Source: Bugula neritina (lineage: Eukaryota; Animalia; Bryozoa). From it: a DNA stretch of 19,272 nucleotides. The position numbers and the translations under genes were made by a program. The stretch covers positions 1-19,272 of the forward strand of contig CAXIUT010000306.1 of NCBI GenBank assembly GCA_964035545.1. Direction: 5' to 3'. Below the pieces are notes generated by a model. It saw nothing but the letters and a program-made list of their open reading frames with translations. It ran no database searches and was not told where the DNA came from. This document shows, piece by piece, positions 1-19,272 of the stretch. The stretch's first letter is position 1, and the number at the start of each line of letters is the position of its first letter.

Positions 1-75
1 CCCAACCCCAACCCCAACCCCAACCCCAACCCCAACCCCAACCCCAACCCCAACCCCAACCCCAACCCCAACCCC
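1..75 (-). repeat. Left terminal telomere (CCCCAA)n
   Basis: Perfect C4A2 repeats from base 1 to 75, in normal 5' chromosome-end orientation. Confidence 0.98.
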
Positions 76-305
76 TACAATCGTATGGAAACTATGTAAT
101 TAATCTTAATAATTCCAAAATAAAGAAATTGCTATTTTCAGCTGAAGCTGTAGATGCTCGTTGCGGGCTATGTAGATTTTATGTTCAGAAATATATAAAT
201 ATCAAACTGATGAAGGCTTTGACAGAGGAGATCAAAGCCTCTTTGAGTAGAATTGAAAATAAAAAGAATTATGATAAGTTAGAAGGATTTATTGACTTTT
301 AGTGA
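75..305 (+). CDS. 5'-truncated C-terminal fragment of a probable Pumilio/Puf-repeat protein
   Basis: Frame is open from the telomere junction: LQSYGNYVI...KKLL...ALTEEIKASLSRIENKKNYDKLEGFIDFE*, with TGA at 303-305. YGNYV resembles the last Puf repeat. There is no start codon before the motif. Confidence 0.45.
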
Positions 306-628
306 TATTATTTTTTATATTTTTCACATTTTTTATTGAACTACTTTCAAATAATTATGGATTAAAATTTTGAATCTTTTCTAGTTGAACTAGTTTGTTT
401 CAAACTAGCAGGGGAACTGATCTTTAATTGAAAGATAAATCAAAGATTAAAATTTATTTTTCATTTTTTAAAATAACAAATCCTTACCATCTTATAAAGA
501 CAATTCATTATTCTTACAGATTGTGATATGTTTTTATGAGACTATTTTAACTTAAATAACTTATTAAATCACTCAATTCCACCTTCTAACTTAATTCAAC
601 ATACTTTCTGCTCTGGTTGAATTCGATT

Positions 629-1028
629 TCAGTAGATAGTCAATGTATATCGTATATCTGATTTTTGAATTGTTCTTCTAGATTTTCTTGTTTTTTTTGA
701 ATAATTACTCTATAATAACTTCTACTTTTATAGAGATCCTTCTTGAGATTGCTGAAGACTTGCCATAAACTGAACTGTTTCTTCTTCTTTCTTCATTCGA
801 TAGGCCTTCAAAGAACTAGCTAAACTTTAGATCGTTTTTTTGTTCTTTCTAATCCTGAGTAACAATATAAATACCTTCCTGAGCAATTTGTGTTCTTTTA
901 TTGGCTCTGAGAGATTCTTTTCTAAGGTTATTGGTGATATTGAAAATTTAATTGTCGAGGTAATGAACTTTAGAGTAAGAGTGGATGAAGTGCTGATAGA
1001 CTCTCTGGTCTTGGTACTTGCTGAACAT
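629..1028 (-). CDS. Hypothetical protein, gene model uncertain
   Basis: ATG at 1028 (MFSKYQDQRVYQHFIHSYSK...), divergent from NDUFA7, with a typical 20-nt intron at 855-874. The spliced frame hits TGA near 808 unless the T7 run at 835-841 has a 1-nt error. The 3' end is unresolved. Confidence 0.35.
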
Positions 1029-1100
1029 AATATTTATTTCAAAGACTTATAATTTATTGATTCAATGGTTTGATAGAGGTTCGTATTGATAATAATTTCA

Positions 1101-2017
1101 ATGAACAAAATGATGAACCGTTTCTGGTAGTTATCTTTGCATTCAGGGACTGGATATTTCATCCGGCTATCAGAAAATATAAACATCCTAACCTCCAAGC
1201 AGTCACTTATAGATATCCTTCTCCTGGAAATTAACCTCTCAACTCTATGAATCCAGACTACCAACCAGACTTTAAAACTCCCTACTCTCACTCTCAATAT
1301 GATGTACGCTACACCAATCCCACGCCAATGTAAACTATAGACATCACTGAATAAATAAAAGCTGCTCCTATAGGTTCTTCTCCTATTTTAAGGTATACGA
1401 TTATATATACAGACTGAAAAAGGCAGGAATATTGAAGAAGAGTGATGAAAACAATGCAGATGCAGTTGCCAATGCAAAGGCCAAATTTTAGCAGAAGTTT
1501 GGATTTTCAGCTGATGAAGATGGTAGAATGAGTATGATTCAGTTTACAGTAATAAAGAAGAAGGATATCTTTTAAGATCAACTAATAGAGAAGAGGTGGC
1601 TGCCTATATTAAATCATCATACCAAGAGGTTCGAAATGCTAAGACTGAATTTTATGAGTATGCCAATATCCGTTCGACGATTGTTGATCCTGAGACTGTT
1701 CCATTGGAGTCGGTGGACATGTTTGTTGCTCCTCAAATGCAACAGGGACAGATCACCAATTAATATATGATAGAAAAAGAGATCGTAGTTGTTGTTTGAT
1801 TCAGAATGAGATCGAAAAGAAAAAGAAAATCGATGTTTACGCTGGTGATGCTCGATTTTGGAAGACTATTGATGATTCTTTTGATAATTCTGAAGTTTAG
1901 AAGATCCAGAAGTATCTTGGAGATCAGGAGCCTACTTCTTTTGAGATTAGATCTTCTAAGGTGGAGTTTTAGTATGATAAAGATGGAAACATTAAAGACC
2001 TTCACCCCAAACATTGA
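1101..2017 (+). CDS. NDUFA7: Mitochondrial complex I accessory subunit NDUFA7 (B14.5a/NUZM), ciliate type
   Basis: Four 20-nt introns (1127-1146, 1393-1412, 1523-1542, 1785-1804). Protein: MNKMMNRFWDWIFHPAIRKY...YRYPSPG...DFKTPY...NADAVANAKAKF...TNREEVAAY...YAGDARFWKTIDDSF. It matches ciliate NDUA7 as I recall it; no search was run. Confidence 0.85.
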
Positions 2018-2212
2018 TCGACTAATCATTTCTAAATAGGTCTAGTTATCAAAGATAAATGAAATATTAGCAAAATTCAACAGTTTTCACTAAACATTTT
2101 AATAATTAATGAGTTATTGAGGATTAATAAGTTTATTTTCTTTACAGAAAACAAGAAAAGGTAGATTAACAATAGTATTCATTAAATTATCTTTAAAAAT
2201 AAATAGGCCATA

Positions 2213-2689
2213 TCAATTCTGGTTAATTTCATCTTCACTATCGATATAATCTTCGATATCTTACTTTTATTCTTCTTTCTCCTCAAATAAACTTTTGTTT
2301 GAGTTGCTTGTTTTCTTTGTAAGTTATCGAGGACTATTCTCTTCTACTATTTCTTATTTTTCATTATTTTCTTATTTTTTTTAACTATTTTACCCATTTA
2401 TAGGTGTAATGATGCGAGTGTCTTTGGATATTTAAGGGTTGGTAGGTGATGAAGAGAGTTGAGTTGGTTAATTTTTGACTAAATGTTGTTGTTTGGGAGT
2501 TGGATGATTGTTATTCATAGTATTTGGACTATTGTGGACAGGTTAATCAATTTGATCGCTGAGAGAAATGTCTTACTGATTGACAAATTCTTCTTATTCT
2601 ATTTCCATGGTGGGTCCATAGGAGTTTCTTTTGGGTTTGATTAGCCATTTGTTGATGAAATCGTTCAAACAAGGACAAATACTTTCCAT
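2213..2689 (-). CDS. Hypothetical acidic low-complexity protein (158 aa) with N-terminal CPC motif
   Basis: Intronless ORF under TAR=Glu: MESICPCLNDFINKWLIKPKRNSYGPTMEIEEEEF...EEKEEEKEDIEDYIDSEDEINQN*. Confidence 0.75.
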
Positions 2690-2848
2690 TTAAACTATTT
2701 ATATTAAAACACATACCTGCTCATTATACCTTTACCATTACTTTATAAATCTAAAATATAAAACTAAAAGTTTCAATGAGTTCTATTTACATTAGCATCT
2801 TATTTTTTAAGTTATATTTTATTTTTTATGAAATGAGTATGTAGAATA

Positions 2849-4375
2849 TCATTGATCTTATAGTTAGTTGTTTTTCTTTTTTCTTTTTTATCCATGAGTT
2901 TTTTTATATTTCATCCATTTAGTTCCACTTTATATATATTTTTTAATGACTTCTTAGTTTTCAGATTCCTCGTCTTCTTTGGTTATTTATTTTTATCCTT
3001 TTTTTTTCTTTTTTGGTTGAATTAATTTCTGCATCTACTAAAAATCAAATAATTATGCTTATTTCTCTACTATTACAGGTTGACTTAACTTCTTTAACTT
3101 CTAATCTGATGATACAGGAATTAATTCTTCATAATATATTATAAGTTCTGCAAGATTATCTACTTTTAGTTTCTATAACTTCTTGATTAAATTTTATCTT
3201 TGATAATAAATGATCAAATTGCAATTGTTAGTGTAATCTTTGAATATTTCCTTTGAAGATTTTATTATTGGACTGAGATTATTAAAATCATTGATGTTAG
3301 TCAAAAAGTCATTAAGATAAATAGCCTTCTACTGAACAAATATTTTTTATTCACCACTCGTTAAGAGATCTTCATATCTTTAAAGAATAAATTCAGATAC
3401 TATACATCCTGAATCTTTATTGAAACCTTCACAGACAACATATTTATTGTTGCTAAAAGGGTTGGACATGAAACTCTTATGCAAAGTAACCTTTGAAAAT
3501 GAAGATTTCAATAAAAATAAATATTAAACTGTTTTTTGGGTGTAAGTACCAGCTATTTTAAGCAAAGCATGCTGACCTTAATTGAGAACTGCTGTCAAAA
3601 TGGCTATCTGTGCCTGCAAGTAAGGCCATAGCTGTACTTCTTACCTTAATACTGACTCACAAGGCTATAATTCAGGAAAACTATCACAAATATAAAGATG
3701 TATTCCTCCGAATAGTTGATCTTTTTCTCTTCCAATGCTTTTGATTTAAGTAATGTAGTTTTGAATTTATTCTAATCGATTATAGTTGATTTTTCTTAAC
3801 TGAGGACGAGATAATTGAGCACAGTTGATGATGATTTCTTGTTCATATTCGAAGAGTTATTGGAGAAGAGTTTTTCTGAGATGTTCATAAAAACAAGAAT
3901 TTTATCCTTAGTAGTAGACCAGGTATGTGATAAGGGCATGATCTTTAATAGAAAATGCTGTTTATCTTAACACATCTAAAGTACCTAAAAGTTATAAAAA
4001 TTAAAATAGCTGATTTTTGTCTGTTTTGCTTGTAAAAAAGCACTTTCTTAATCCATCTAGATTATCTTGAGTGAGAGAACTTTTGATAAATTCTAGATTA
4101 TGTCCATTAAGATTGACGTTTTTTCTTTGGGTGGAGTTATTTACTATCAGGTGTTTTTCTAGATCTCGAGGGGTAAAGCTTCTTGAAGAAAGTTGTTTTG
4201 TTAGAGAGGCATCGGCAATAAATTTGACTGTAGATTATCCTGAAGCATTTCTTTTGGTGGGTTGTTTTGGTTGGGCGTCGAAGTTCAAGAACTTGTAGCC
4301 GATGGGTTCAGATATAGAGGAAGATTAGCATTGTGCTTTTGAGTAGTACTTGCTTTGTTTATAAATGCAGTTCAT
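2849..4375 (-). CDS. FtsJ/RrmJ-fold, CMTR-like cap 2'-O-methyltransferase-related protein, probably degenerate (508 aa)
   Basis: Intronless 1527-nt ORF. Segment GIHLYICD...QIAILTAVLNEGQHALLKIAGTYT...YLFLLKSSFSKVTLHKSFMSNPFSNNKYVVCEGF parallels the CMTR1 pattern GVH..AD...G.F.CK.FD....LY..F..V...KP..SRP.NSERY.VC.G. Confidence 0.7.
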
Positions 4376-4675
4376 ATATTAAATGTAGAACTAAATTAGT
4401 AATTATTTTTATCAAAACTGATAAAAATGTTGAATAAAAGATTTTTATTATTGATTGAGAATCTTACAACCACAATAAATTATATTTCAATTCTCAAATT
4501 TATAATTTATAAATATTTACATCCTTTTTCCTTATTTTATTAACTTTCTTGTCTGTTTTAAATATTAATAATTTTTTCTTTAATCAACAACAATAAATAT
4601 TAAATATTAGATATCTGTGATTAAAAAAGATGTAAATTAATAATGTGATTTGCTGGTATATTTGTAATTAGTGGA

Positions 4676-5052
4676 TCAATTATTTTTGGACTAAGCTTTA
4701 TTTTTTGTGATTTATGGTTTGATGGAATGATACTATTGGTTATTTTTAGTGGTTTATTGATTGGTTTTTTATTGTAGGTCGTAGAGATTGATAAAGTATT
4801 AATGATTTTATGAGGATTAGAGGAATGCAACATAAATTGTCGAACCCATAATTGCAGGTACAAGTCCTTTTCCTATTCTTTTATCTTTGCTAAAATCCAT
4901 TGCTGGCTATAAAACCAAAAATAACTTCTTTATCAACTTATTCATTCTCTTTAACTTACAATATTATTATCCTTTTATTCTTCGCTTTTAATGCTTAATC
5001 AACTATTAAATATACTTACCAAGAATTGGCTTTCTAATTCAATAGAACTCAT
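4676..5052 (-). CDS. Possible small hypothetical protein, strand and frame ambiguous
   Basis: ATG at 5052 plus a 17-nt GTAAG...TAG intron gives MSSIELESQFL...MNKLIKKLFLVLEPAMDFSKDKRIGKGLVPAIMGSTIYVAFL...*. A competing hydrophobic + strand frame from ATG 4427 also exists. Confidence 0.25.
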
Positions 5053-5114
5053 CTGATTTGAATTATAAATATATTATTTAGCTCTAAAGGAACTGTTTAT
5101 TTAAATTCAAATTA

Positions 5115-5176
5115 GGGGTTGGGGTTGGGGTTGGGGTTGGGGTTGGGGTTGGGGTTGGGGTTGGGGTTGGGGTTGG
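5115..5176 (+). repeat. Interstitial telomeric tract (GGGGTT)n, 62 bp
   Basis: Perfect repeats with unique sequence on both sides, and ATTA immediately on each side. Confidence 0.97.
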
Positions 5177-5203
5177 ATTAATTTAAAAGAAAAAAGATAG
5201 TTA

Positions 5204-8200
5204 ATGTGGAATGTGATAGAAGCAGGAGATCCATATGATATCCATAAGTATGAATTAGTGTATCTAGGTCAATGATCGCTACTTTACCTGGTCATAAAAA
5301 ATCAATGGGAACCCATCTTGAAATAGTCTGTTTACTCCAAGCAGCAGAAATAGAAAGACTTTGCCTCTTTCTTTAAGAACATGCCCTCAAGTAAGCCACT
5401 TGGTATCAAGATTAAGAGAACAATAACGGATTAAACTCGATAGGCATAGTTATGAAGTCCAGATTAAAGAATTGACTGAAAGGATAGGAGGGTAGGAGAT
5501 TTTTAAATCTTAGAATGAGAAACTTAAAGAGTTTATAAGAAAACAAGGGGTAAATATTTCTTACTCAGAAAGAACTTTAAGAAATGCAAAGAAAATAAAA
5601 CAATCCAGAAATGACAAGAAAGTATGAGTAAAGTTTAGGACAAATGCAATAACTTTTAAAAGAGAAAGGAATTATCGAGAACGAGCTTTATCGGAGTAGA
5701 TAGTCACTAGTTTTAGCTGAAAGACAGTTGCGTATCAATCAGGAAAGATTTAACAAAGAGATAGAAATACTCACTCAAAAGCTAAATTCATAAATGGTTT
5801 ATAAACAACAATTATAAAATGAAGGTAAACAATATTAAGAATAAATGGTTAGACTGAAGGTTAGTTGTAATTAACTGTCATTGCAATTATAAAAAGGTAA
5901 AAACGATAGTCGATTATTAATAATCGAAAGGCAACAAAGATAACAATTACTATCAACAATGAAAGAGTATGAAAATCGATTTTAGTTACTTGCTGGTTAA
6001 ATAGAAAGACTAAATCTTTGTTTAAGAGACAAATCCAAGTAACTTAATTAACACTATATGCGTGGGAAACAGCTAGCAGATGAGAAGAAGTTTTGTCAAG
6101 AACAGAACGCTGAGTTGTAATTGAAGTTAAAGAATATTTTGGTTGATTTGTCTAACCTTTAGAAACAAAATAGATAAATTTGGGTTTAAAAAAGTACTTT
6201 AGAAGAAAGATAAAGTTTAATTTTCGAATATTAGTCAAGAATATAAAAATTAAGTTTTGAAGTTGATAGATTAAACAGTGTACTCAGGATAAAAGTTGAC
6301 TAACTTGAGTAATTAAAAAGAAATAACAGATAACAAGAGTTAACTATCCGTAACTTAGAGTTAATATAAGCTGAAACTCAAGAACTTAGAACTAAATTTT
6401 CATAAATATCAAAGAAAATGTTTTAATATGAAAAACAAATTACTGTTCAGAGTCAATAAGTAGATAGATTAAATTTATCTCTGAAAAGAATGATAGATTA
6501 GATAAATAATACTTAAAAAACTCTTAAAAATAGTGAAAAAGATCTTTAAATTCAAGTCGAAAGAAGTAAAGAACTTGAGTTGAATTTCTAAAATTTAAGT
6601 AGAGATGTGTAATGGGGAAGAGAACAATTGAAAAAAAAGTAAAAAAAGATCTCAGAGATGTAAGAGATAATTAGGATGATCCAAGAATAAAAATAAGACC
6701 TTATTGTTAAAAACATTGAGAGTTAGTAGAAATTAAAACTAAAAGAAAACAATGAATCAAATAGTATAGATCAATAGAAAGTTAAAGCTTAGTTAATAGA
6801 TAAAGTAACAAGATTGACAGAGTTAATGATTAAAAATGAGATAAAAATTAAAGATTTGTAGAAAAAATAGATTTTTCTAAAAACTGAAATATCTCAACTA
6901 TCGATAAAAACTAAAAACTATGAGATTCAATTATAAAAAATTAAAGAATAAAAGAAATACTAAATAGAAAAGCCAAATAGAGAAAATAACTTCTGAAGAA
7001 AAAGAAAAATAACCCAGGAAAATCTAAATAGAATTAATAAAAAATATTATAAAAAGATAGACAAGGTTAACCTTTAAGATAAGTTTAATAAAAGCTATTT
7101 GAAGATGAATAGAGTTATAAATCTTAAGGAAATGTACTTTAAGGGTAAAGTATTTAAATAATTATTTTATAAGCTTAAAATTAGGAGTTGAGAGGAGATC
7201 TTAATAGATTTATTCAAGAAAATTAAAAATTGATAGAAAGGCATGAAGTATTACTAAATTAATATTAAAGCTAGAAGCAAAAGTTTGAGTAAGCTGGTGA
7301 GTATTTTCAAAAGGTATTGATTTTTAGTGATTAAATAAGTCGTTTAAATGGAGTTCTTCAGGGTAAATAAAAATAGATTGAAGGATATCTTTAGAATTTG
7401 GTAAAATGCAAGTCAAAAATAAAAGAGTTTGAAGAAAAGATGAATAGTATTAGTAGTGAATTAGAGACATATCGAGTTAAAGGTGGAACATAGCGAATGA
7501 GAGAAGAAACATATCGAGATAACTAAGTATTTATTCCATCAGAAGTTAGTGAAAATTAAACTATTAAAAGGTTATAAGGATAACTGGAAATAAAATATGC
7601 AGATATGGTAGTTAAATAGGAACAGGTAGTATCCTATCAAAACAAAATCAAGGTTGTCGGTGAATAAATATAAAGATTGAATGGCATTTTAAGAAATAAG
7701 GTATTAGAAAGTGAAAGACTTGAAGATCATAATAGGGAATTGAGTCAGTTAGATAGCTAATTAAAAATACAATTAGAAGAAAGTAGTAAGGTAGTATAGT
7801 CTTTAAAAGGAAAAATAACAGAGCAAAATAATGAACTTGAACGACTTATTATGGTAATAAACTAGAAAAATAATTATTTACGTCAACTATAGAATAAATT
7901 ACAAGTTATAAATCATTTGGATAGCTTCGAGGGAAATATCAAAGAATATAGACTTTAAATAGAACGACTCAACCTGAAACTTAATGAAAGTAGGATTTAG
8001 TTGGAATCAGTTGAAAAAAAAGATCGTAACTACTTGGTATAAATATAAAGACTTAATAACTTGTTGAGGATTAAAATTTAAGAATGTTAATCAAAGAATC
8101 TAGAACTCAAACGGATTCATGAACAAATTATTGTCCATAGAAAATAAAAGATAGGATAAATAGATGAAATAGTGATAAGATAAAACGAGGAAGTAACTTC

Positions 8201-8646
8201 TGTGGAAATAACAAAAGCGAAAGAACAAATGCATGTTTACTAAATCAGGTAAGAATTCCTTACTCAGAATAAAATAACTTCACTAAGAGTTCTAAAAACT
8301 TCAAATTATATTGAAAACTTTAAGATAGGACAACCAATAAGTAGTTGGTCTCAAAATTGAAAGAGATAGTCTAATCGTAAAGGTAATTTATAAAAATATT
8401 AAGAATAAATGGCTTGGAGGATAAATCGATAGACTTAATCTAATAGTTGAATCACAACTTCAATAATTATACTAAGCTAAAGAAAAAATCATTTAAGACA
8501 ATTCTTTTTAGAGGAGAATAAGTGAAGATTTGGGACTTTTTGTGGTTCTTTTTGCTGAAATATAAGCTTTAAGATAGAGATTGAGGCAGAGAGAACAAGA
8601 TGTAGCCGAAATGAAAAGAGAAGCTATTAGTTATCATCGAGTTTGA
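5204..8646 (+). CDS. Large coiled-coil, charged-repeat (EIERLN-type) cytoskeletal/pellicle-like protein, about 1120 aa, with one apparent frameshift
   Basis: Introns at 5248-5267, 5391-5410, 5550-5568 (19 nt) and 8249-8267 (19 nt). Recurrent motifs AAEIERL, GEIERLN, SQEVDRLN, EEIERLN and C-terminal LFVVLFAEIEALR. The frame changes between 6924 and 6996. Confidence 0.8.
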
Positions 8647-8805
8647 TATGATTTTATCGTTTTTTATCCCTTGAAGTATCTAGATATTTATATTGGTCTA
8701 TAAAAGAAAATCTAATTCAAGAAAGGCAAATTTGAATAAGTCAAACTTGATAGATAGCTTTATATAAATTTGACACACAAATTAAATATTGTTTTGTAGG
8801 TTTGG

Positions 8806-10092
8806 ATGGATCTAAACGAACTTGTGAAAATACTTCCTAAACAAGCTGCTAATTGGAATATCTAAGACGTGACTCTTTGGCTCAACTATATTGGTCTTCC
8901 AGGACTGATTCATTCTTTCAGTAGATCTAAAAATACTCAGGATAATTTTCAATCGAAGGATGGATTTTACTACTATTAACTGAAGATCAACTCAATAATG
9001 ATCTTCAAGTGTGTTCTAGAATTCAGAGGAAGAAAATAATGAACTGTATGAACTACTTTATATAGGGATATCTTTTTTGAAAGATAATTCGAGAAGTATT
9101 CATAGTAAGATAACTGAGTTATTGTAATCTCAATTGATAGAAGATGAAGAATGTTAGATAACTACTTTGACAACTAGCGATTCTATTCGAAATTTTTTGT
9201 CTAATTAGAGTCAAAAGACAATCGAGATGTGTGAATTAAATCGATAAATACTAACATCTAGTCAAAAAGAGACATTGAAACCTGTACATCTCAATCTATA
9301 TGTTTATGAACGTTTTGGATTAGAAAATAAATTTTTTAGATGTAATGGAAAAACTCTTAATTTGGGAAAAGCTGCTGATAATCAAATCATATTAACAGAT
9401 AACTTAATAGATCTATATCAAATAAGTATTTTCCATAAAAAGTATCAACACTACATTAAACCTATCTCTTAAGATGGACTTTGGATCAAAGTTAACAAAA
9501 GAATAAAAATAGATAAAAAATACATCATTTAAATGGGAATAACTCAATTTTATGTTACTGTATGGGATCAAATTCTTTTTTTGAATGTTGTTTAAAATAG
9601 AGAAGTTAAAAAAAATATGGATTCTTATAACTTTCAGCCCTAAGGATAGAAAGTTATTAGAGTTGGACGTTCTCCTAGATATTAGCTTTCTTTCTCCCTT
9701 GATACAACTATGAGTTCTCTACATGGAAAATTTAGCTTTATTGATAAAAATTGGTACTTCTAAGATATGTAGACAACCAACAGGTACTTGTTTGCTAAAT
9801 TAGTTCTTGGTATTTTTGTGCTTTAGAAGAAAAAATAGTTGATAAGATGATGTTCAGAGCGGGAAGGACAACCTTTATATTTGAGTGCAGGTTAAAATAG
9901 AACGATGATATTCAATCATTGAGCTCGAATCAGTCAATGGGTATTTGCAAAATATGTAAAAAGGTCTAAAAAAATAGTTATTTTTCTCCTTGTTCGCATA
10001 GCAACAGTTGTTTGGAGTGTGCAGTTAAAACTAGTTAGTGTTTTCAGTGTAAGCAATCCTTCTCAAAGATCAACAAAATTTATCGTCAGTGA
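8806..10092 (+). CDS. SAM-FHA-FHA-RING protein, putative E3 ligase (paralog 1, 408 aa)
   Basis: 20-nt introns at 8921-8940, 9046-9065, 9784-9803. SAM: WNIEDVTLWLNYIGL...IEGWILLLLTEDQL. FHA: RVGRS...MSSLH...EDMETTNSSW. RING: CKIC...PCSHSNSCLEC...CFQC. Confidence 0.9.
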
Positions 10093-10176
10093 TCATTTTA
10101 TAGTTACTTTTAAAATAAGTCAATGATTCACACTCTATAAATAAAGAATGAGACAAATCAAAGAGTCAAAAAGGGA

Positions 10177-11368
10177 TCATGAAGCATTTTTTTGGAAGAG
10201 ACTTTTGAGTGGAATTTTTTTGTCTTCTTTGTACTGTTAAAGAAGATAACTCTGAAAAACACCATGAATATTACGTTTATCACTTGTTTATTTTCTATAT
10301 TTTTTATCCAAATATTTCATTATTTATTCGATTGTTTTCACGAACTCATTCTTTGAGGAAAGGTCACGCAAATGAATATTGTTAGGAATTTCTGCCTCCT
10401 TGATAGATTCTTTTATCTGGGTTATTATCTCCTCAGAATAACTTTATCCTTTCTACCTTCGACATTTACACATGTAGAGGTATGCTTCGATAATGGATAG
10501 TAGTTTGGAATCTAATTATGGCACTTTGTTTTTCCTGAAGTAGTTTTTAAGTGCTTTTCTTCCAAGATCATCTAAAGGAATGACTCTTGAGTGATCTTTG
10601 AGGTTGCTGCATTTGTTGAAATAACTTTGCAGTTTATCTTTACTGCTTTTATGCAGCTTTTACTCCATTTAGTTCATATAGATTTGTGCATTTCTGATTT
10701 TGATAGCCTAAGTAATAGCTATGAGCCTATATAGAAAGATAGCTACCAACTATACATGTCTTCTTTGGAACTTGTTTTGAAGACAGTGCTATTAAATTTG
10801 TCTCTTACGGAAAAAATGCATTTCTTTTAATTGACTATTTAAACAATTGAGTTTTAGAGTGGCATAAAAGATACTTTCTTTTCTATTTAATCTAAAAGAT
10901 ACATGTTTCTTTGAATTTGTAGAATGTTAAATAGTCGTGATGGAGTTTGAGTTGGCATTATTAATAAGAATTTTTGCTTTATACATGTTTGCTAAGGGTG
11001 CCTGATCGAATAAATTTCATGTTATCAGTGAGAGGCATATGATAACTTATTTTAGGGACTGTACTTCTTTAAGATCCATATCCCATAATTAAATATGTTC
11101 TTTGGTCTTACGAAGAGATATTTAAAGTTTATTTGAATCTTTAATATCCGTTAAGTTTTCTTTTTAGGATGACTTATGCTGTTTTTTTATTGAGGATCAT
11201 GAGGTAGAGGAATTGATCTTAATCTAAATCGTTTTAAAGTTGATAATCTCTAACAGTTTGGTCTTTAACTTCTCTATTTTTTTTTAGATCTGCATCGAGG
11301 TAGACTAAAATAGCATTACTTTTAGTTTTTTAAACTGGATTGCTAAAAATTTTTTTGAAAAAGCTCAT
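10177..11368 (-). CDS. PH-domain protein (383 aa)
   Basis: 20-nt introns at 10883-10902 and 10727-10746. PH signature: IRSGTLSK...LKLHHDYLTFYK...MPLENSIV...FSV...VFKTSSKEDMYSWLIAITEAI. Confidence 0.85.
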
Positions 11369-11441
11369 AACTTTACCTTTGACTTAATTTTATATCAATT
11401 AAACCAATAAAGATAAAAATAATAATAGAAATGATAGAAAA

Positions 11442-11825
11442 TCATGGAAACGAATTGATTAACTATGAGATCTAATAGTTATCAATGATGAGTTAATTTG
11501 ATTTTTAAAGTTGTTCTTCTGAGCATGATTATGAAGCAATTTTTGTGAATATTCTAGTTATTATTAATTTTGATTTTTCAATTAATCTATTTATTTCTTC
11601 TATTGAGGGCATTAATTCCTGAAAGGTTATTTATATTTGTTTTTGCATTTTTTTTTTTAGTTGAGTTCTAACTTCAGTCTCTTATTTTTTCTAGAGTTAT
11701 TGAAGTTGATTTGAATTGTTCTTCAAATATAATATTTGCTTTTATTTATCTTTCCAAATTGTCTTTAAACCAATATTCGAGTTCATTAATGCATAAAGTT
11801 GCTACTAAATTGTATCTTCTTGCAT
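11442..11825 (-). CDS. Hypothetical coiled-coil protein (127 aa)
   Basis: Intronless ORF: MQEDTIEEQLYALMNSNIGLKTIW...IEEINRLIEK...ELINSFP*. Confidence 0.6.
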
Positions 11826-11868
11826 TTGGTTCAACAATAGTAATTATAGTAGAAATTTTTTATTAGAT

Positions 11869-11936
11869 GGGGTTGGGGTTGGGGTTGGGGTTGGGGTTGG
11901 GGTTGGGGTTGGGGTTGGGGTTGGGGTTGGGGTTGG
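11869..11936 (+). repeat. Interstitial telomeric tract (GGGGTT)n, 68 bp, in a divergent intergenic region
   Basis: Perfect repeats between ATG 11825 (-) and ATG 11990 (+). Confidence 0.97.
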
Positions 11937-11989
11937 TTTGAACTGTTTATTGTTAAATAAGTTAACAGTAACAATATAATTCAATTCAA

Positions 11990-13196
11990 ATGGACTACCA
12001 AGCACTTGCCTAACTACTACCTCTTTCCACTTAACTATGGAATCTACAACACGTACAAGAGTGGCTTCGATTCATACATCTACCCATGCTTGCTACCTCT
12101 TTCAGTATTTTCTTTCTCATAAAGGTCAACAAAAAATAAATGGAAAAGCTTTGCTTTCTCTTAATTAACAAAAACTCTAAAACCTCGGAGTAAATAGCTC
12201 TATCATAAAAAGAAAACTTATTCGCTGGATCAGTGAAGGGTTCTATTAATTTTCGGACCATCTCAACTGCATAGGTCTTGAAAATAAATAAAATATTTCT
12301 TTATTGTCTAATAAAGAGACTTCTTATAGAGGAGATTTCAAGATAAAACCGGACAGTAACAAGATACCTCAAGTGTGTTCTTCTGGGATGGTGATTAGGA
12401 GTTGTGACAATAGTTTGGCTGTTTTTTATATGATGAAATAGAAGGTGATGAAGATTGGTCGTTCTTCTGCTAATGTGATTCGTAGTTTATAGGTTTCGGT
12501 ATAAAATTAACACGCAGAGGTGAGAAGAAGTGGTAATAAACACTATTTGATGGATAAGGGAACATAAGCAGGCACATTTATCAAGATAGTGCAACCTAGA
12601 ATACTTCGAGTGGGTTCTTTGATTTAGATGGGAAGTTTTTTAATGGAAGTAATAGAAGTAAAAAAGTAATAGAAAGTTATTTTTATTAAAATAGTACATA
12701 TGATATCAAATTAATTCTGTGAGGTTGCTATATCTCTAGTAGATGGTTGTAGTTTTTATAGTTTTGGTCGTAGAAAATCTAATAATTTCTCTGCTGATGA
12801 CTAGCATTTAAGTGGAATCCATGCTAAAATATTTTGGCAACAATCTTAATTTGTAATGGAAGATATGCATTCTACCAATGGGTATTTTGAATCTTAGTTA
12901 GAACCTGGCTGAGATTAAATAAACCAAGAGTACCTTCTGAACTCTTTGGTCTTGAGGAGGGATAAGTCTTTAAAATAGGAACCACTATCACTTACCAGTG
13001 TGTGACTCAGTAAAATCGCGAGTAGAAGATGTAGATAGAATATGAGGACAGTTGTATGAATTGTGGGAGGGAGAAGAGAGACCTGCTTTTTCTTCCTTGC
13101 AAGCATAATGCATTTTGTTGTGGCTGCGGGGAGGGGATGAACTGTTGTCCTCTTTGTGAAAGTGCTATTGACTAGCGGATTAAAATCTACATTTGA
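11990..13196 (+). CDS. SAM-FHA-FHA-RING protein, putative E3 ligase (paralog 2, 388 aa)
   Basis: 20-nt introns at 12105-12124 and 12882-12901. SAM: WNLQHVQEWL...INGKALLSLNEQKLENLGV. FHA1: KIGRSSAN. FHA2: FGRRKSN...HLSGIH...EDMHSTNGTW. RING: CMNC...PCKHNAFCCGC...CPLC. Confidence 0.9.
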
Positions 13197-13236
13197 TGTT
13201 TTAATTCATACTCTATAATAACTGTATATTCAAAGA

Positions 13237-14065
13237 ATGAACGACTACAAAAGTCTTTACGAAAGTAGAAGTGCTGAATTCGATGAACTAAACGAACAGT
13301 TCATCGCTTATCAATGTAATATCAGTCTTAGTAAGAATAAACTAACTCTATGATCAATGAACTAGAGGATTAAAATACTTAACTTAAAACAAAACTTCAA
13401 AAAATAGACAATTAACTCGCATCTCAAAAGGTAAAAGTTGAATTAGTTAGGATAAGAAAAAAACTCAGACGAACTCTCTGGAAAAAGAACTATAACTTAT
13501 TAAACGATAAAGAAATGAGTTCAAAACTAGATTCGAAGAATTCCAACGTAAAGTTATTTAACTCTAAAATATCAATGAAACACTATAGTCTTAAATAAGA
13601 GCTGCTAACTGTATGCTCAGCGAATATTAACAAAGAGTTGAAAAGACCATGGAAGAACTAGCTTTGCTACAGATAGAACTGGAAGAAAGCAAAGAGTCCA
13701 ACCAATAACAGGTTACAAGATTAAAAAGTCAACTGAAATAAACTGAAGATGAGTTAATGGTGCTTCACATCAAACATCAGAAACATAATGATGAGTCAGA
13801 ACACAGAAGGTCAAGGCTATCATCTGCCTCTTTCTCTTCTCAAGAATAAATGACTCCTATTCGATCTGCAGAATTAGATTAAGAACCAAAAATGGACCCT
13901 CAGATCACTAGCACTCCTCTGAACTTACCAGGACTGACAGGAATGGACTTCAAGAGAAATAAAGAGACTTCTTTCCAAAATACTATTACTCTAGTTTCTA
14001 ATTTAATCAGTTAGCTTGATAATCGTGCTCGTAAGATTAGAGCAAAAAAGAAAAATGTAGTATGA
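13237..14065 (+). CDS. NudE/NDE1-like coiled-coil protein (dynein/LIS1 regulator family, 262 aa)
   Basis: 20-nt introns at 13316-13335 and 13431-13450. KVIELENINETLESEIRAANCMLSEYEQRVEKTMEELALLQIELEE...QVTRLK parallels NDE1 RELEQANDDLERAKRA...[22 protein letters not shown]...VQRLK. Confidence 0.75.
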
Positions 14066-14101
14066 TAGACTATCTATTTTATTTTAAATATGTTTGAATA
14101 A

Positions 14102-16354
<2,253 letters not shown>

Positions 16355-16462
16355 TCTTTTAGAATTTTATACTTTTATAGAAACTACTTCAATAGAATTT
16401 TTAAAAATAATGAACAATCAAACATAACTTCAAAGATAAAAATTGTAAAAAGGATATAAGAC

Positions 16463-17672
16463 TCAAATTATTATATGATTTAGATTTATATCTTAAATTA
16501 TCTAAAAGTAGATAATATCTGAGTTTATATTTCTGGTTATTAATACTGGGGTTGGGGTTGGGGTTGGGGTTGGGGTTGGGGTTGGGGTTGGGGTTGGGGT
16601 TGGGGTTGGGGTTGGGGTTGGGGGCAAAAAGTCCAAGATCTGTGGTTACAGCTATGATATTTCTTTACATTTAAACATAGTAGGCGTATCCCATATCGAA
16701 AAGATACTGATGTTTCTTTATTTATTTCGGAACACCAACCAAATCCCAGAGATGGAACTTTTGAATAATAGCTGTGGTTCTCCATTGAGTAAAAAATCCA
16801 TTAAAATCAACTGAAATAATAGAATATTCTGGACTTTATCTGTTTACTAATGAAAAAGCTACAATAGAAGAGTTATGACTATAAAGGTCCCTTTGAACTT
16901 TGCTCTACATTTGATAAGACTTCACATTTTTATTATTTTAAACAAAAATAAGTTATTTTCCAACAAGCCTACCATGAGATAAAAAATGATACTCTTTTTC
17001 GTACGATTTTATAGGAATGACTTTCTTTTGAGATAGATCATAGTATTGAAACTACTTGAGTTGATCTTCTCTATACTCCATCCATAGGATTCTATTTCCA
17101 TCAAAATCAAAGGGGACAGCTACTTAGGGCATCTTGAACTCACGATGAAGTTTGATTTAATTTTTGTCTGCGTCTATTTCATACATATTTTTGTTTTATA
17201 TTTCTAGTTCAACAGCTGAGTTGCTTCATAATTACAAATAGCTTATCGTTTTTGAGTAGGAAATGCACAAAATATGACTATTTTGACTCCAAACATCATT
17301 GTCATTGAATGAGAACAAACAATATTCGAATGACTTCTTAAAATACTCAGCATTTAATCATTTTAGGGATCTCTAGCTAAATCTTTGATCCTTATATGTC
17401 GATCTCCAATAGCTATATAGATCTTGTTATCTTTGAAGCAAATCTAAATAGTATTATTTTTACTCCTCGAATGAGTTCTTCGTCTATTTGTTCGAAGTAG
17501 GTAGTTTTTTTAGTTTATAGTCCAAATGAACCTACATAGCCTGAAATTGATCCAAAAAGAACTTTATCTTTGTAGACAAATAAGTACTATTGGCGATTTC
17601 TATGGCTGTAAGAGGTTCTCCTATTCTTATTTTGACCCAGGACAAGTACTTGGCCTTTGTTTACTACATCAT
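16463..17672 (-). CDS. Beta-propeller (WD40-like) protein interrupted near its C-terminus by a telomeric tract
   Basis: 20-nt introns at 17568-17587, 17444-17463, 17216-17235. Motifs VLFGSISGYVG, IYIAIGD, VPFDFDGNRILWMEY, YLFDMGYAYY..IAVTTDLGLF. The end at 16463 assumes 16548-16623 is removed. Confidence 0.75.
16548..16623 (+). repeat. Interstitial telomeric tract (GGGGTT)n, 76 bp, inside a CDS
   Basis: Perfect repeats followed by one extra G at 16624. Confidence 0.97.
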
Positions 17673-17705
17673 TTTAAATATTATCAAATTAAATACCATA
17701 ATAAA

Positions 17706-18536
17706 TCAAACTTTTTGTTTCGTTTCATCTGATAGTTATATCTGTTCTTTTGAGATTTAGTCAAAAGGTATTTGAAAGTTTAATTGATTGGTGATTTCTC
17801 GATTTCTTGTGTTGATGAAGTTTTCAAAAGGGTCTAGTTTAAGACCTAATGAATATTGATAGTATTATTTATACCATCCTTTTTTTGCAGTTTATATAGA
17901 GTCAAGAGCATATCTTCTTGTTTTATAGTAATCTTTAAGTTTGCGATATTGGAAGTTATATTTCATGTCTTCCACGTCTTTATAGAGGTTAAATTTCTGA
18001 TCATACTCTAGATACATCGATTGTTAGTCTGGTATCATTCTGAAGTATTCATGGTTGATAATATGGTATTAAGAAGTTGCTAAGAGTTTTAATATGGAGG
18101 AAGGAATTAAAATCAATAGGGAAGGGAAGAACAGTTTTCTCCAAGTAGCTATTGTGAAATAATCACCACAGGTATGAAGACCTAAGACTCTAGATAGACC
18201 AAAAGCAAGAAGGAGTGTATATTTGATAGATTCTTCAACATAAATTTAAAACCCTATTGCTTGATCATCCATTCTCTTGAAATCTATCCTATCGAATTCT
18301 TTATATTGTTTGAATTGTCTTAATATCTTTTATTTTTTATTTAATCTAATCAAGTACTCATCAATTTATTGCTGTCTTGCATCTTCTTTAAATATTTTTT
18401 TAGAAGTAAAACTTTTATATTCGATCTCAACTTCTTTGTTGGGTCTATACTATCTGGCTGAGTGAAGTTGCTAGGAGTCAAAAGACTCACTTGTTACATA
18501 GAGAATATCTTTTATTTTAGCACAGTTGCTTCCCAT
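17706..18536 (-). CDS. Hypothetical protein with two hydrophobic segments and an MGxxC N-terminus (276 aa)
   Basis: Intronless ORF: MGSNCAKIKDILYVTSESFD...YTLLLAFGLSRVLG...LFFPSLLILIPSSILKLLA...ETKQKV*. Confidence 0.75.
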
Positions 18537-18682
18537 TAATTCAATCAATGATATAATACCGAATATAAATGATCAACAGTCAAAGGACTCACTTGTTACA
18601 TAGATAATATCTTTTATTTTAGCACAGTTGTTTCCCATTAATTCATAGGATCAATAATATAATATTGAATATAAAATGATCA
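18476..18682. repeat. Imperfect tandem duplication of about 100 bp (18476-18575 and 18578-18682)
   Basis: Both copies read agtcaaa.gactcacttgttacataga.aatatcttttattttagcacagttg.ttcccattaattca...gaatataaa(a)tgatca, with substitutions and small indels. Confidence 0.93.
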
Positions 18683-19097
18683 GGGGTTGGGGTTGGGGTT
18701 GGGGTTGGGGTTGGGGTTGGGGTTGGGGTTGGGGTTGGGGTTGGGGTTGGGGTTGGGCTAACAATTAAAGTAGTTCGTTTTTAGTGTAGATCATATACTG
18801 ATTTCTACAAAAGATAGATATTCTGAATCAAGCATTTTATCTACTTTTCTGAATGACAGTTTATACATAATAAGACTTAACCTGACAGGGGAAGATGATA
18901 AAAATATGTTAGAGTTGATAACTGAGTCAGATAATGAGTATTCAATTCTATACAATATCCATGATCTTTTTATTTATGGAGTGAGTGTTAAGAAAGACAA
19001 AATTCATTTAGGAAGACAAATTGCTACTCAGTCTCTCAATCATATCAAAAATCAGTTCAAATAAGTCATCTCTTGGACAGAAGCAGACAGTGATTGA
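18676..19097 (+). CDS. Hypothetical protein interrupted in codon 3 by a telomeric tract
   Basis: ATG ATC A|tract|GC TAA CAA... gives MISEQLKEFVFSVDHILISTKDRYSESSILSTFLNDSLYIIRLNL...WTEADSD*. The 3' end could extend through an unrecognised intron. Confidence 0.55.
18683..18757 (+). repeat. Interstitial telomeric tract (GGGGTT)n, 74-75 bp
   Basis: Perfect repeats. The last G (18757) may belong to the host sequence. Confidence 0.97.
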
Positions 19098-19203
19098 AAT
19101 ATCTAGAACCTCCATACAATCATTTAGTTAACATAAACCATATTTAATCAATCAAAATATTCATTTGATCAAAATGCTACCTATCTTGTGATTATTAGTT
19201 ATA

Positions 19204-19272
19204 GGGGTTGGGGTTGGGGTTGGGGTTGGGGTTGGGGTTGGGGTTGGGGTTGGGGTTGGGGTTGGGGTTGGG
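19204..19272 (+). repeat. Right terminal telomere (GGGGTT)n
   Basis: Perfect G4T2 repeats to the end of the window. Confidence 0.98.

Follow-up and report, generated by a model that had tools for sequence, protein, structure and literature searches.

The window analysed here is the whole of contig CAXIUT010000306.1 from the Bugula neritina assembly GCA_964035545.1, 19,272 nucleotides (nt) long, which is the complete contig C315 of a 216-Mb assembly with 321 contigs. Besides a telomere at each end, it carries four internal GGGGTT tracts of telomere length, all in the same orientation. We give about an even chance to the reading that these tracts are real, heritable chromosome ends embedded in a macronuclear chromosome of a peritrich ciliate. 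The reading is based on the anatomy of the tracts, on the lack of head-to-head joins and of adapter letters, on a base preference at the junctions, on the position of the junctions at gene boundaries and on the same linkage in other sequencing runs.

Six perfect telomeric tracts in one contig

The left terminal telomere (positions 1-75, minus strand) consists of 75 nt of C-strand, CCCCAA-type repeats. Its first letters, CCCAAC, give a start phase shared with most other ciliate contigs whose starts were read. The right terminal telomere (19204-19272, plus strand) consists of 69 nt of GGGGTT repeats with GTTGGG as its last letters. Four perfect GGGGTT tracts lie between them on the plus strand: J1 at 5115-5176 (62 nt, (GGGGTT)10 plus GG), J2 at 11869-11936 (68 nt), J3 at 16548-16623 (76 nt, or 77 counting an in-phase T at 16547) and J4 at 18683-18757 (75 nt). 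These tracts delimit five units, designated A to E from left to right. Tandem Repeats Finder returned 100% matches and 0% indels for all six tracts, and an 18-mer of the repeat had 56 matches in the window as compared to 0 expected from dinucleotide shuffles. The species-specific repeat of the internal tracts, perfect and in a single orientation, is identical to the terminal telomere repeat of the ciliate. The flanks of all four internal tracts were read, and no CCCCAA tract follows any of J1 to J4; the junction letters contain no restriction-site or adapter signature. The description given by the sequence-only reading of the window, four co-oriented, perfect tracts of telomere length with no CCCCAA following, is therefore confirmed by the repeat search, the shuffles and the flanks.

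The DNA of a ciliate within the assembly

Nine contigs of 10.9-35.6 Mb account for about 200 Mb of the assembly, and about 310 small contigs exist besides. Five of the nine large contigs start with CCCCAAA (TTTGGGG) telomere repeats. The main organism is very AT-rich, with the standard genetic code. In-frame TAA or TAG codons are absent from the HSP70 genes of the large contigs and number up to 35 in those of small ones; in the HSP70 gene of C87, 8 of the 12 aligned TAA/TAG codons stand opposite Glu in the host protein. Within the window, long open reading frames (ORFs) appear only when TGA is taken as the sole stop. The HSP70 alignment and the TGA-only ORFs together identify a ciliate with the peritrich nuclear code as the source of the small telomere-capped contigs. 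Judged from its codons, the window is peritrich ciliate DNA, with TAA and TAG read as Glu, rather than DNA of the main organism, and the same holds for many small contigs. Such a ciliate would contaminate, or live on, the assembled host.

A pattern for the 5′ end of the small-subunit ribosomal RNA gene, searched in the assembly, matched the ribosomal DNA of the host only. The main organism also has tandem intronless HSP70 genes plus multi-exon copies (C2:970684-977433; C1:21299077-21323487). Four small contigs (C12, C13, C200 and C300) have a GC content of about 46-48% and look bacterial, pointing to more non-host DNA in the assembly.

Recurrence of internal tracts in the assembly

The layout of the window, a C-strand left end, at least one internal G-strand tract and a G-strand right end, is also found in C10, C11, C14, C16, C18, C22, C231 and others. 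A 36-nt telomere probe had 5054 forward and 2716 reverse matches across the assembly, from which we roughly estimate about 0.9 internal tracts for each telomere-capped molecule. The six addition sites of the 19-kb window, which had been called very dense, are indeed a high density, but one that is unexceptional in this genome according to the same rough estimate. Complete chromosomes of 5-10 kb with no internal tract are present as well (C19, C36, C58).

Contigs longer than about 30 kb are scaffolds, and 200 N link the components of C15, C21 and C63, with an outward G-tract facing an inward C-tract. A head-to-head G-tract/C-tract junction was found inside no contig and occurs only across such 200-N gaps, which excludes simple end-to-end fusion of intact minichromosomes, as the sequence-only reading had argued from the missing CCCCAA. 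Short pieces between two tracts are found near contig ends, of 18 nt in C30, 18 nt in C21, 63 nt in C47, 90 nt in C63 and 446 nt in the window. The end of C18 consists of 76 nt of repeats, a single A and 93 nt of repeats. Second or tract-free copies of the five units were not found in the assembly, where only paralog hits of 65-80% were obtained, and an all-against-all BLAST of the fetched loci gave no allelic pair.

Internal junctions compared with terminal telomeres

We sampled 34 internal junctions and 21 terminal tracts from contigs of this ciliate. Internal tracts measure 57-132 nt and terminal tracts 38-134 nt. The internal tracts are as pure as the terminal ones, with a longest pure run of at least 46 nt in 28 of the 28 sampled, showing no decay. 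The end phase ...GTTGGG is the commonest in both groups (18 of 21 terminal and 11 of 29 internal tracts), the remaining internal tracts being spread over other phases.

The two sides of the internal tracts are not alike. The GC content of the 100-nt flanks is 0.23 on the left as compared to 0.29 on the right (paired Wilcoxon p = 0.0009). The left value is near that of most sampled terminal subtelomeres, and the right value equals the contig average. This jump in composition across the tract argues against simple contiguity of the flanks. C immediately follows an internal tract in 13 of 28 cases as compared to 17% expected (p ~3e-4), and T is favoured at the second position. Beyond this weak C/A-T-A/T preference after the tract, no conserved flank was found at the tracts. 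The preference for C shows that the joins are not random in sequence. Neither head-to-head telomeres nor adapter letters were found at the 34 junctions.

Position of the junctions relative to genes

Gene models for the window were built from ORFs and paralogs, without RNA, using TGA as the only stop. An ATG follows 27 nt after J1 and another about 55 nt after J2. J3 falls within the last codons of a gene, at its 3′ end, and lies 195 nt upstream of the following one. J4 starts 7 nt after an ATG belonging to a 102-bp repeat unit. In these predicted gene models, all four tracts of the window lie at gene boundaries, as sites between genes would. The positions fit telomere-addition sites between tightly packed genes of one multi-gene locus; they do not prove that the flanks were once contiguous. 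Some right flanks begin a few codons inside a gene. In C231 (18141-19485), the only ciliate copy of SDHA begins about 8 codons into the protein, to the right of a tract, and an ATG plus seven codons stand just to its left. That J4 and the SDHA tract each have an ATG immediately to the left speaks weakly for contiguity of the flanks.

The SDHA tract of C231 is 94 nt long and slightly irregular, and the SDHA frame changes near 18664-18670, which may reflect a tiny intron. Removal of the tract as a GT-AG intron was considered and rejected: taking out the sequence between a GT in the tract and the AG of the CTAG behind it would preserve the SDHA frame, but such a removal would not preserve that of the ORF at J4. 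We also discarded a rule for the orientation of genes next to tracts, as it held at 4 of 4 tracts in the window but no bias was seen at 26 junctions elsewhere. In C14 (3554-4136), three clustered intron-containing tRNA genes, missed by ARAGORN and found with Rfam, lie next to an internal tract, the first starting 2 nt after it. In C11 (5311-7553), a 2.2-kb tandem array with a period of about 29 bp or a multiple, and copies 91-94% alike, directly follows an internal tract.

Linkage of the units in independent runs

Ten runs from three studies contain parts of 13300-19200. Four of them were aligned to 13300-19272, the stretch that includes J3, J4 and the right end. Three contigs, X1 record 4 (4148 nt), X2 record 11 (2716 nt) and X3 record 15 (7388 nt), flank J3 on both sides, and the bridging runs span two studies, X2 record 11 coming from P1 and X3 record 15 from P2. 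In the J3-bridging contigs exactly 92 letters separate 16537 from 16630, a spacer known by its length and not by its letters. Similarly, X1 record 7 and X2 record 14 have 109 letters ahead of 18766, which fits J4. A 97-nt query spanning the junction was also used, and the runs contained 3-4 of the six words sampled from it (only six were sampled).

Unit D of X1 and X2 departs from the window at about 10 sites, at full depth, and the two runs are not identical to each other either. These allelic differences show that the reads of X1 and X2 did not build the window. The X3 contig stops at 16683 in the reverse complement of the primer AAGCAGTGGTATCAACGCAGAGTA. This is a fragment end from library preparation, so the linked molecule pre-dated the fragments of that library. 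The same contig extends a further 3981 nt leftwards beyond 13300; if colinear with the window, it would cross J2. Units C and D together and unit E have similar depths, 12.7 versus 8.3 in X1 and 129 versus 99 in X2; the lower depth of E is at most a hint that some molecules may end at J4.

Since units C and D are bridged in three other runs, with other alleles and the same spacing, a one-off chimera or a consensus artefact is unlikely. The data also argue for a C-D-E order that is stable in this ciliate. The joins would be heritable, since identical links with unchanged spacing are present in samples whose alleles differ. The proposal of the sequence-only reading that the tracts are insertions into a colinear locus is upheld as far as the C-D linkage and the gene-boundary sites go; this support does not extend to exact prior contiguity of the flanks, as no tract-free copy was found, the composition jumps across the tract and some right flanks start inside a gene.

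No tract-free (empty) site was found in the assembly, in metagenome contigs or in protein-indexed assemblies, and the exact 30-mer of the right flank of J3 is absent from metagenome contigs. Three window ORFs, by exact-product look-up, and the J3-spanning ORF, by homology search, gave no record in other assemblies. A scan of metagenome contigs for a tract followed by C[AT] had 66 matches, nearly all in GC-rich unrelated organisms or in foldbacks at contig ends, which supports neither side. AT-rich metagenome contigs of other ciliates often end with a G-tract running straight into a C-tract (GGG-CTCAACCCCAA). Examples of such foldbacks are L128 1158-1245, L086 1-67 and the contig ends of L066, L083 and L097; their form is unlike that of the window junctions.

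Embedded chromosome ends as a possible reading, and the explanations that compete with it

If the tracts are real chromosome ends, each would be an end finished by telomerase, with normal length and purity, placed 110-195 nt past the final gene of the left-hand unit. This finished end would be covalently continued by telomere-less DNA starting at a gene boundary. The molecule would then be a polar stack, in which the two-telomere unit A is followed by units B to E, each adding only a distal telomere. The most likely route would be a break at an intergenic telomere-addition site, with telomerase healing on one side only; the uncapped other side would subsequently be joined to the newly healed end. 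The joined piece could be the original germline neighbour or a foreign piece. As macronuclear chromosomes have no centromeres, joined molecules would be passed on at division at no cost and would be maintained. What we infer is the healing by telomerase, the joining step and the way in which the joins are inherited, whereas the anatomy, the genome-wide recurrence, the flank asymmetry and the linkage in other runs are directly seen.

Several observations weigh against this reading. Internal tracts are G-rich in every unscaffolded contig examined (about 14 of 14), with the two-telomere unit at the 5′ end; reverse internal tracts appear only in N-gapped contigs above about 70 kb (C21, C41, C46). 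The co-orientation noted in the window recurs across the contigs of the ciliate. Double-stranded molecules should appear in either orientation, so that this uniform polarity indicates a strand-specific, possibly technical process, and suggests either one-strand read-through or a strand-directed making of the stack. The double tracts separated by a single A and the 18-nt pieces would also fit polymerase run-off followed by template jumping. The tracts would break several genes, namely the only ciliate SDHA (at about codon 8), the propeller ORF at J3 and a small ORF at J4; if these genes are needed, tract-free copies must exist, and none was seen. Finally, every 31-mer is distinct in the Logan contig files, for which no special treatment of long reads is described (PMC12424806). 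The bridging contigs thus cannot contain a pure 76-nt repeat; unless the records are not plain Logan contigs, the 92 letters have to be either an equally long, imperfect tract or some other sequence.

We consider it doubtful, though a serious possibility, that the tracts arose by technical chimerism, small ciliate chromosomes having been concatenated before or during sequencing by a strand-directed process. This could occur through polymerase run-off with a template jump, or through joining of one strand in library preparation, giving units that start internally and end through a telomere. The uniform polarity with the two-telomere unit always 5′ and the anatomy of the units, truncated on the 5′ side and complete on the 3′ side, are as expected from such a process. 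So are the single A between tracts at the end of C18, the pieces of 18, 18, 63 and 90 nt between tracts, and components of about 15-27 kb, near the length of long reads. Oxytricha is known to yield chimeric PacBio reads that contain embedded telomeres (PMC6937825), and the impossibility of pure tracts in Logan contigs points the same way. Nevertheless, the C-D link recurs with the same spacing in three other runs from two studies, with other alleles, on the main path and at depths from 3 to 129, and in X3 it is older than the library fragment ends. The junctions show neither adapter letters nor the head-to-head joins that random ligation would give, and they have a base preference and a position at gene boundaries. 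Moreover, the same data set yielded normally assembled, complete chromosomes of 5-10 kb.

It is rather improbable that the tracts are germline-encoded interstitial (GGGGTT)n sequences at intergenic sites, serving as telomere seeds for optional breakage and kept when no break occurs. Internal C4A2 tracts in the Tetrahymena germline, reportedly described by Cherry and Blackburn in 1985, would be a precedent. The constant position and spacing across samples with different alleles and the location at gene boundaries are compatible with such repeats, and any tract contained in the Logan bridges must be imperfect but equally long, which is what inherited DNA would look like. However, the internal tracts are as pure as terminal ones and undecayed, their lengths (57-132 nt) scatter like those of real telomeres and their end phase matches that of processed chromosome ends. 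One polarity per molecule would also be unexpected for independent elements.

An assembler artefact, in which telomere-ending reads of nested isoforms were merged into the consensus of longer read-through molecules, as the sequence-only reading had suggested with read tails built into the consensus, is very improbable: it would account for the co-orientation, the gene-boundary sites and the depth of E below that of C and D in X1 and X2, with some molecules ending at J4, but overlap and de Bruijn assemblers need reads with the tract-to-flank junction to place the downstream DNA, contigs assembled independently from other runs bridge J3 with the same spacing, and the assembly holds no tract-free version.

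Returning to embedded chromosome ends, a stronger form of this reading would be that "stacked" chromosomes are routine in peritrich macronuclei, finished telomeres being internalised when breaks at intergenic sites are healed on one side and rejoined. In that case the joins, in both tract position and length, would be transmitted via the germline or via maternal, RNA- or homology-guided templating, and the result would be a polar heritable architecture that sets gene dosage along nested isoforms. We regard this extended model as unlikely, but worth stating. If the tracts are real and heritable, they would represent a new chromosome architecture, and an acentric somatic genome would tolerate and inherit internal telomeres at about one per molecule. 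The ciliate would then offer a natural system for studying the rejoining of telomerase-healed breaks, the non-decay of internal repeats and the possibly optional breakage at such sites. If they are technical, they represent a strand-polar type of chimera that telomere-to-telomere checks would pass as complete chromosomes. Several megabases of the assembly are cobiont DNA that uses another genetic code, and telomere-motif screens will flag such contigs.

Units of the window and their genes

Unit A (76-5114), the core, is the only unit capped by telomeres at both ends. Its genes are mainly on the minus strand, and the final 180 nt or so ahead of J1 are non-coding and follow its last gene. Unit B (5177-11868) contains a long coiled-coil ORF on the plus strand and has its last gene on the minus strand. 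It starts 27 nt ahead of an ATG, from which onwards its DNA resembles paralogs in C15 and C310, and ends with about 146 nt of non-coding DNA upstream of the minus-strand gene, followed by J2.

Unit C (11937-16547) has an AT-rich leader of about 55 nt and then an ATG. It contains a complete minus-strand gene at 14105-16354, the start of which is separated from J3 by about 195 nt. Its translation, read by eye, has protein-kinase motifs and two cyclic-nucleotide-binding-like regions, with many TAA/TAG Glu codons, and the product looks like a cGMP/cAMP-dependent kinase. It begins with MGCANAH, a possible myristoylation start judging by these residues. At 14550-14710, contigs of all four aligned runs break with loose ends, and within the kinase gene run X2 skips 95 nt, from 14582 to 14678. 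The stretch may be intron-like or polymorphic, or may be a repeat common to other loci.

Unit D (16624-18682) carries a minus-strand beta-propeller-like ORF and, at its right end, a 102-bp tandem duplication. The ORF enters J3 without a stop; with the tract taken out, it would gain 28 extra codons to a TGA near 16463. The two copies of the 102-bp unit (18476-18682) are 89% alike and stand immediately ahead of J4. In runs X1 and X2, the depth over the 102-bp repeat is 4-7 times that of its flanks and loose ends join copy to copy, which indicates that the array is longer, or present elsewhere, in these samples. Unit E (18758-19203, plus strand) is 446 nt long and consists of an ORF of about 111 codons, open from J4 to a TGA at about 19090, and a 113-nt tail. 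Look-alikes of this ORF in the atlas are Roadblock/LC7 proteins, with similarity scores of 0.85-0.89, a lead only to a Roadblock/LC7-like protein. Eight stop-free pieces, including a 71-residue piece of unit C and unit E, gave no usable hits in Pfam; the pieces are short because TAA/TAG codons are frequent. No tRNA gene was found in the window.

Comparison with known systems

Telomere-addition regions of Paramecium are a related case. In Oxytricha macronuclei, alternative chromosome fragmentation uses internal telomere-addition sites (PMC6937825, PMC3558436). As in such systems, the ciliate studied here would have several addition sites per locus at gene boundaries, from which nested isoforms sharing one end would result, and the pieces of 18-90 nt resemble closely spaced alternative sites at chromosome ends. 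In contrast, known long isoforms read through without repeats and short ones end, whereas here the repeats are embedded and the DNA continues; moreover, only right-end (G-strand) sites occur within a molecule. No repeat-free read-through isoform was found, the assembly having no tract-free copy and the bridging contigs keeping the full 92-letter spacing. The chimeric long reads of Oxytricha also have telomeric repeats inside a long sequence made of small ciliate chromosomes (PMC6937825). The patterns filtered there include head-to-head G-tract/C-tract joins and were discarded as artefacts, whereas the junctions described here are one-sided and recur in other runs. Tracts of the Tetrahymena type, C4A2 repeats at the ends of transposon-like elements, differ in that here no conserved flank and no inverted pair is found and all tracts of a molecule are co-oriented.

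Vertebrate interstitial telomeric sequences are said, following Nergadze et al., to have been inserted by telomerase during the repair of double-strand breaks. They share with the present tracts exact hexamers, one orientation and non-telomeric flanks, and the proposed steps are a break, extension of one 3′ end by telomerase and rejoining. The vertebrate insertions are few, short, scattered and evolutionarily fixed in a centromeric genome, whereas here about one tract of telomere length is found per chromosome, co-oriented and undecayed, in an acentric somatic genome. In human and yeast cells with telomere dysfunction, telomere-to-break and short-telomere fusions arise that are unstable and rare in centromeric genomes. 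In these fusions too, an end that still bears its repeats is joined to an end from which the repeats and some subtelomeric DNA have been lost. Unlike them, the joins described here would be stably inherited and stacked as many as four deep, and the core unit would have them on one side only.

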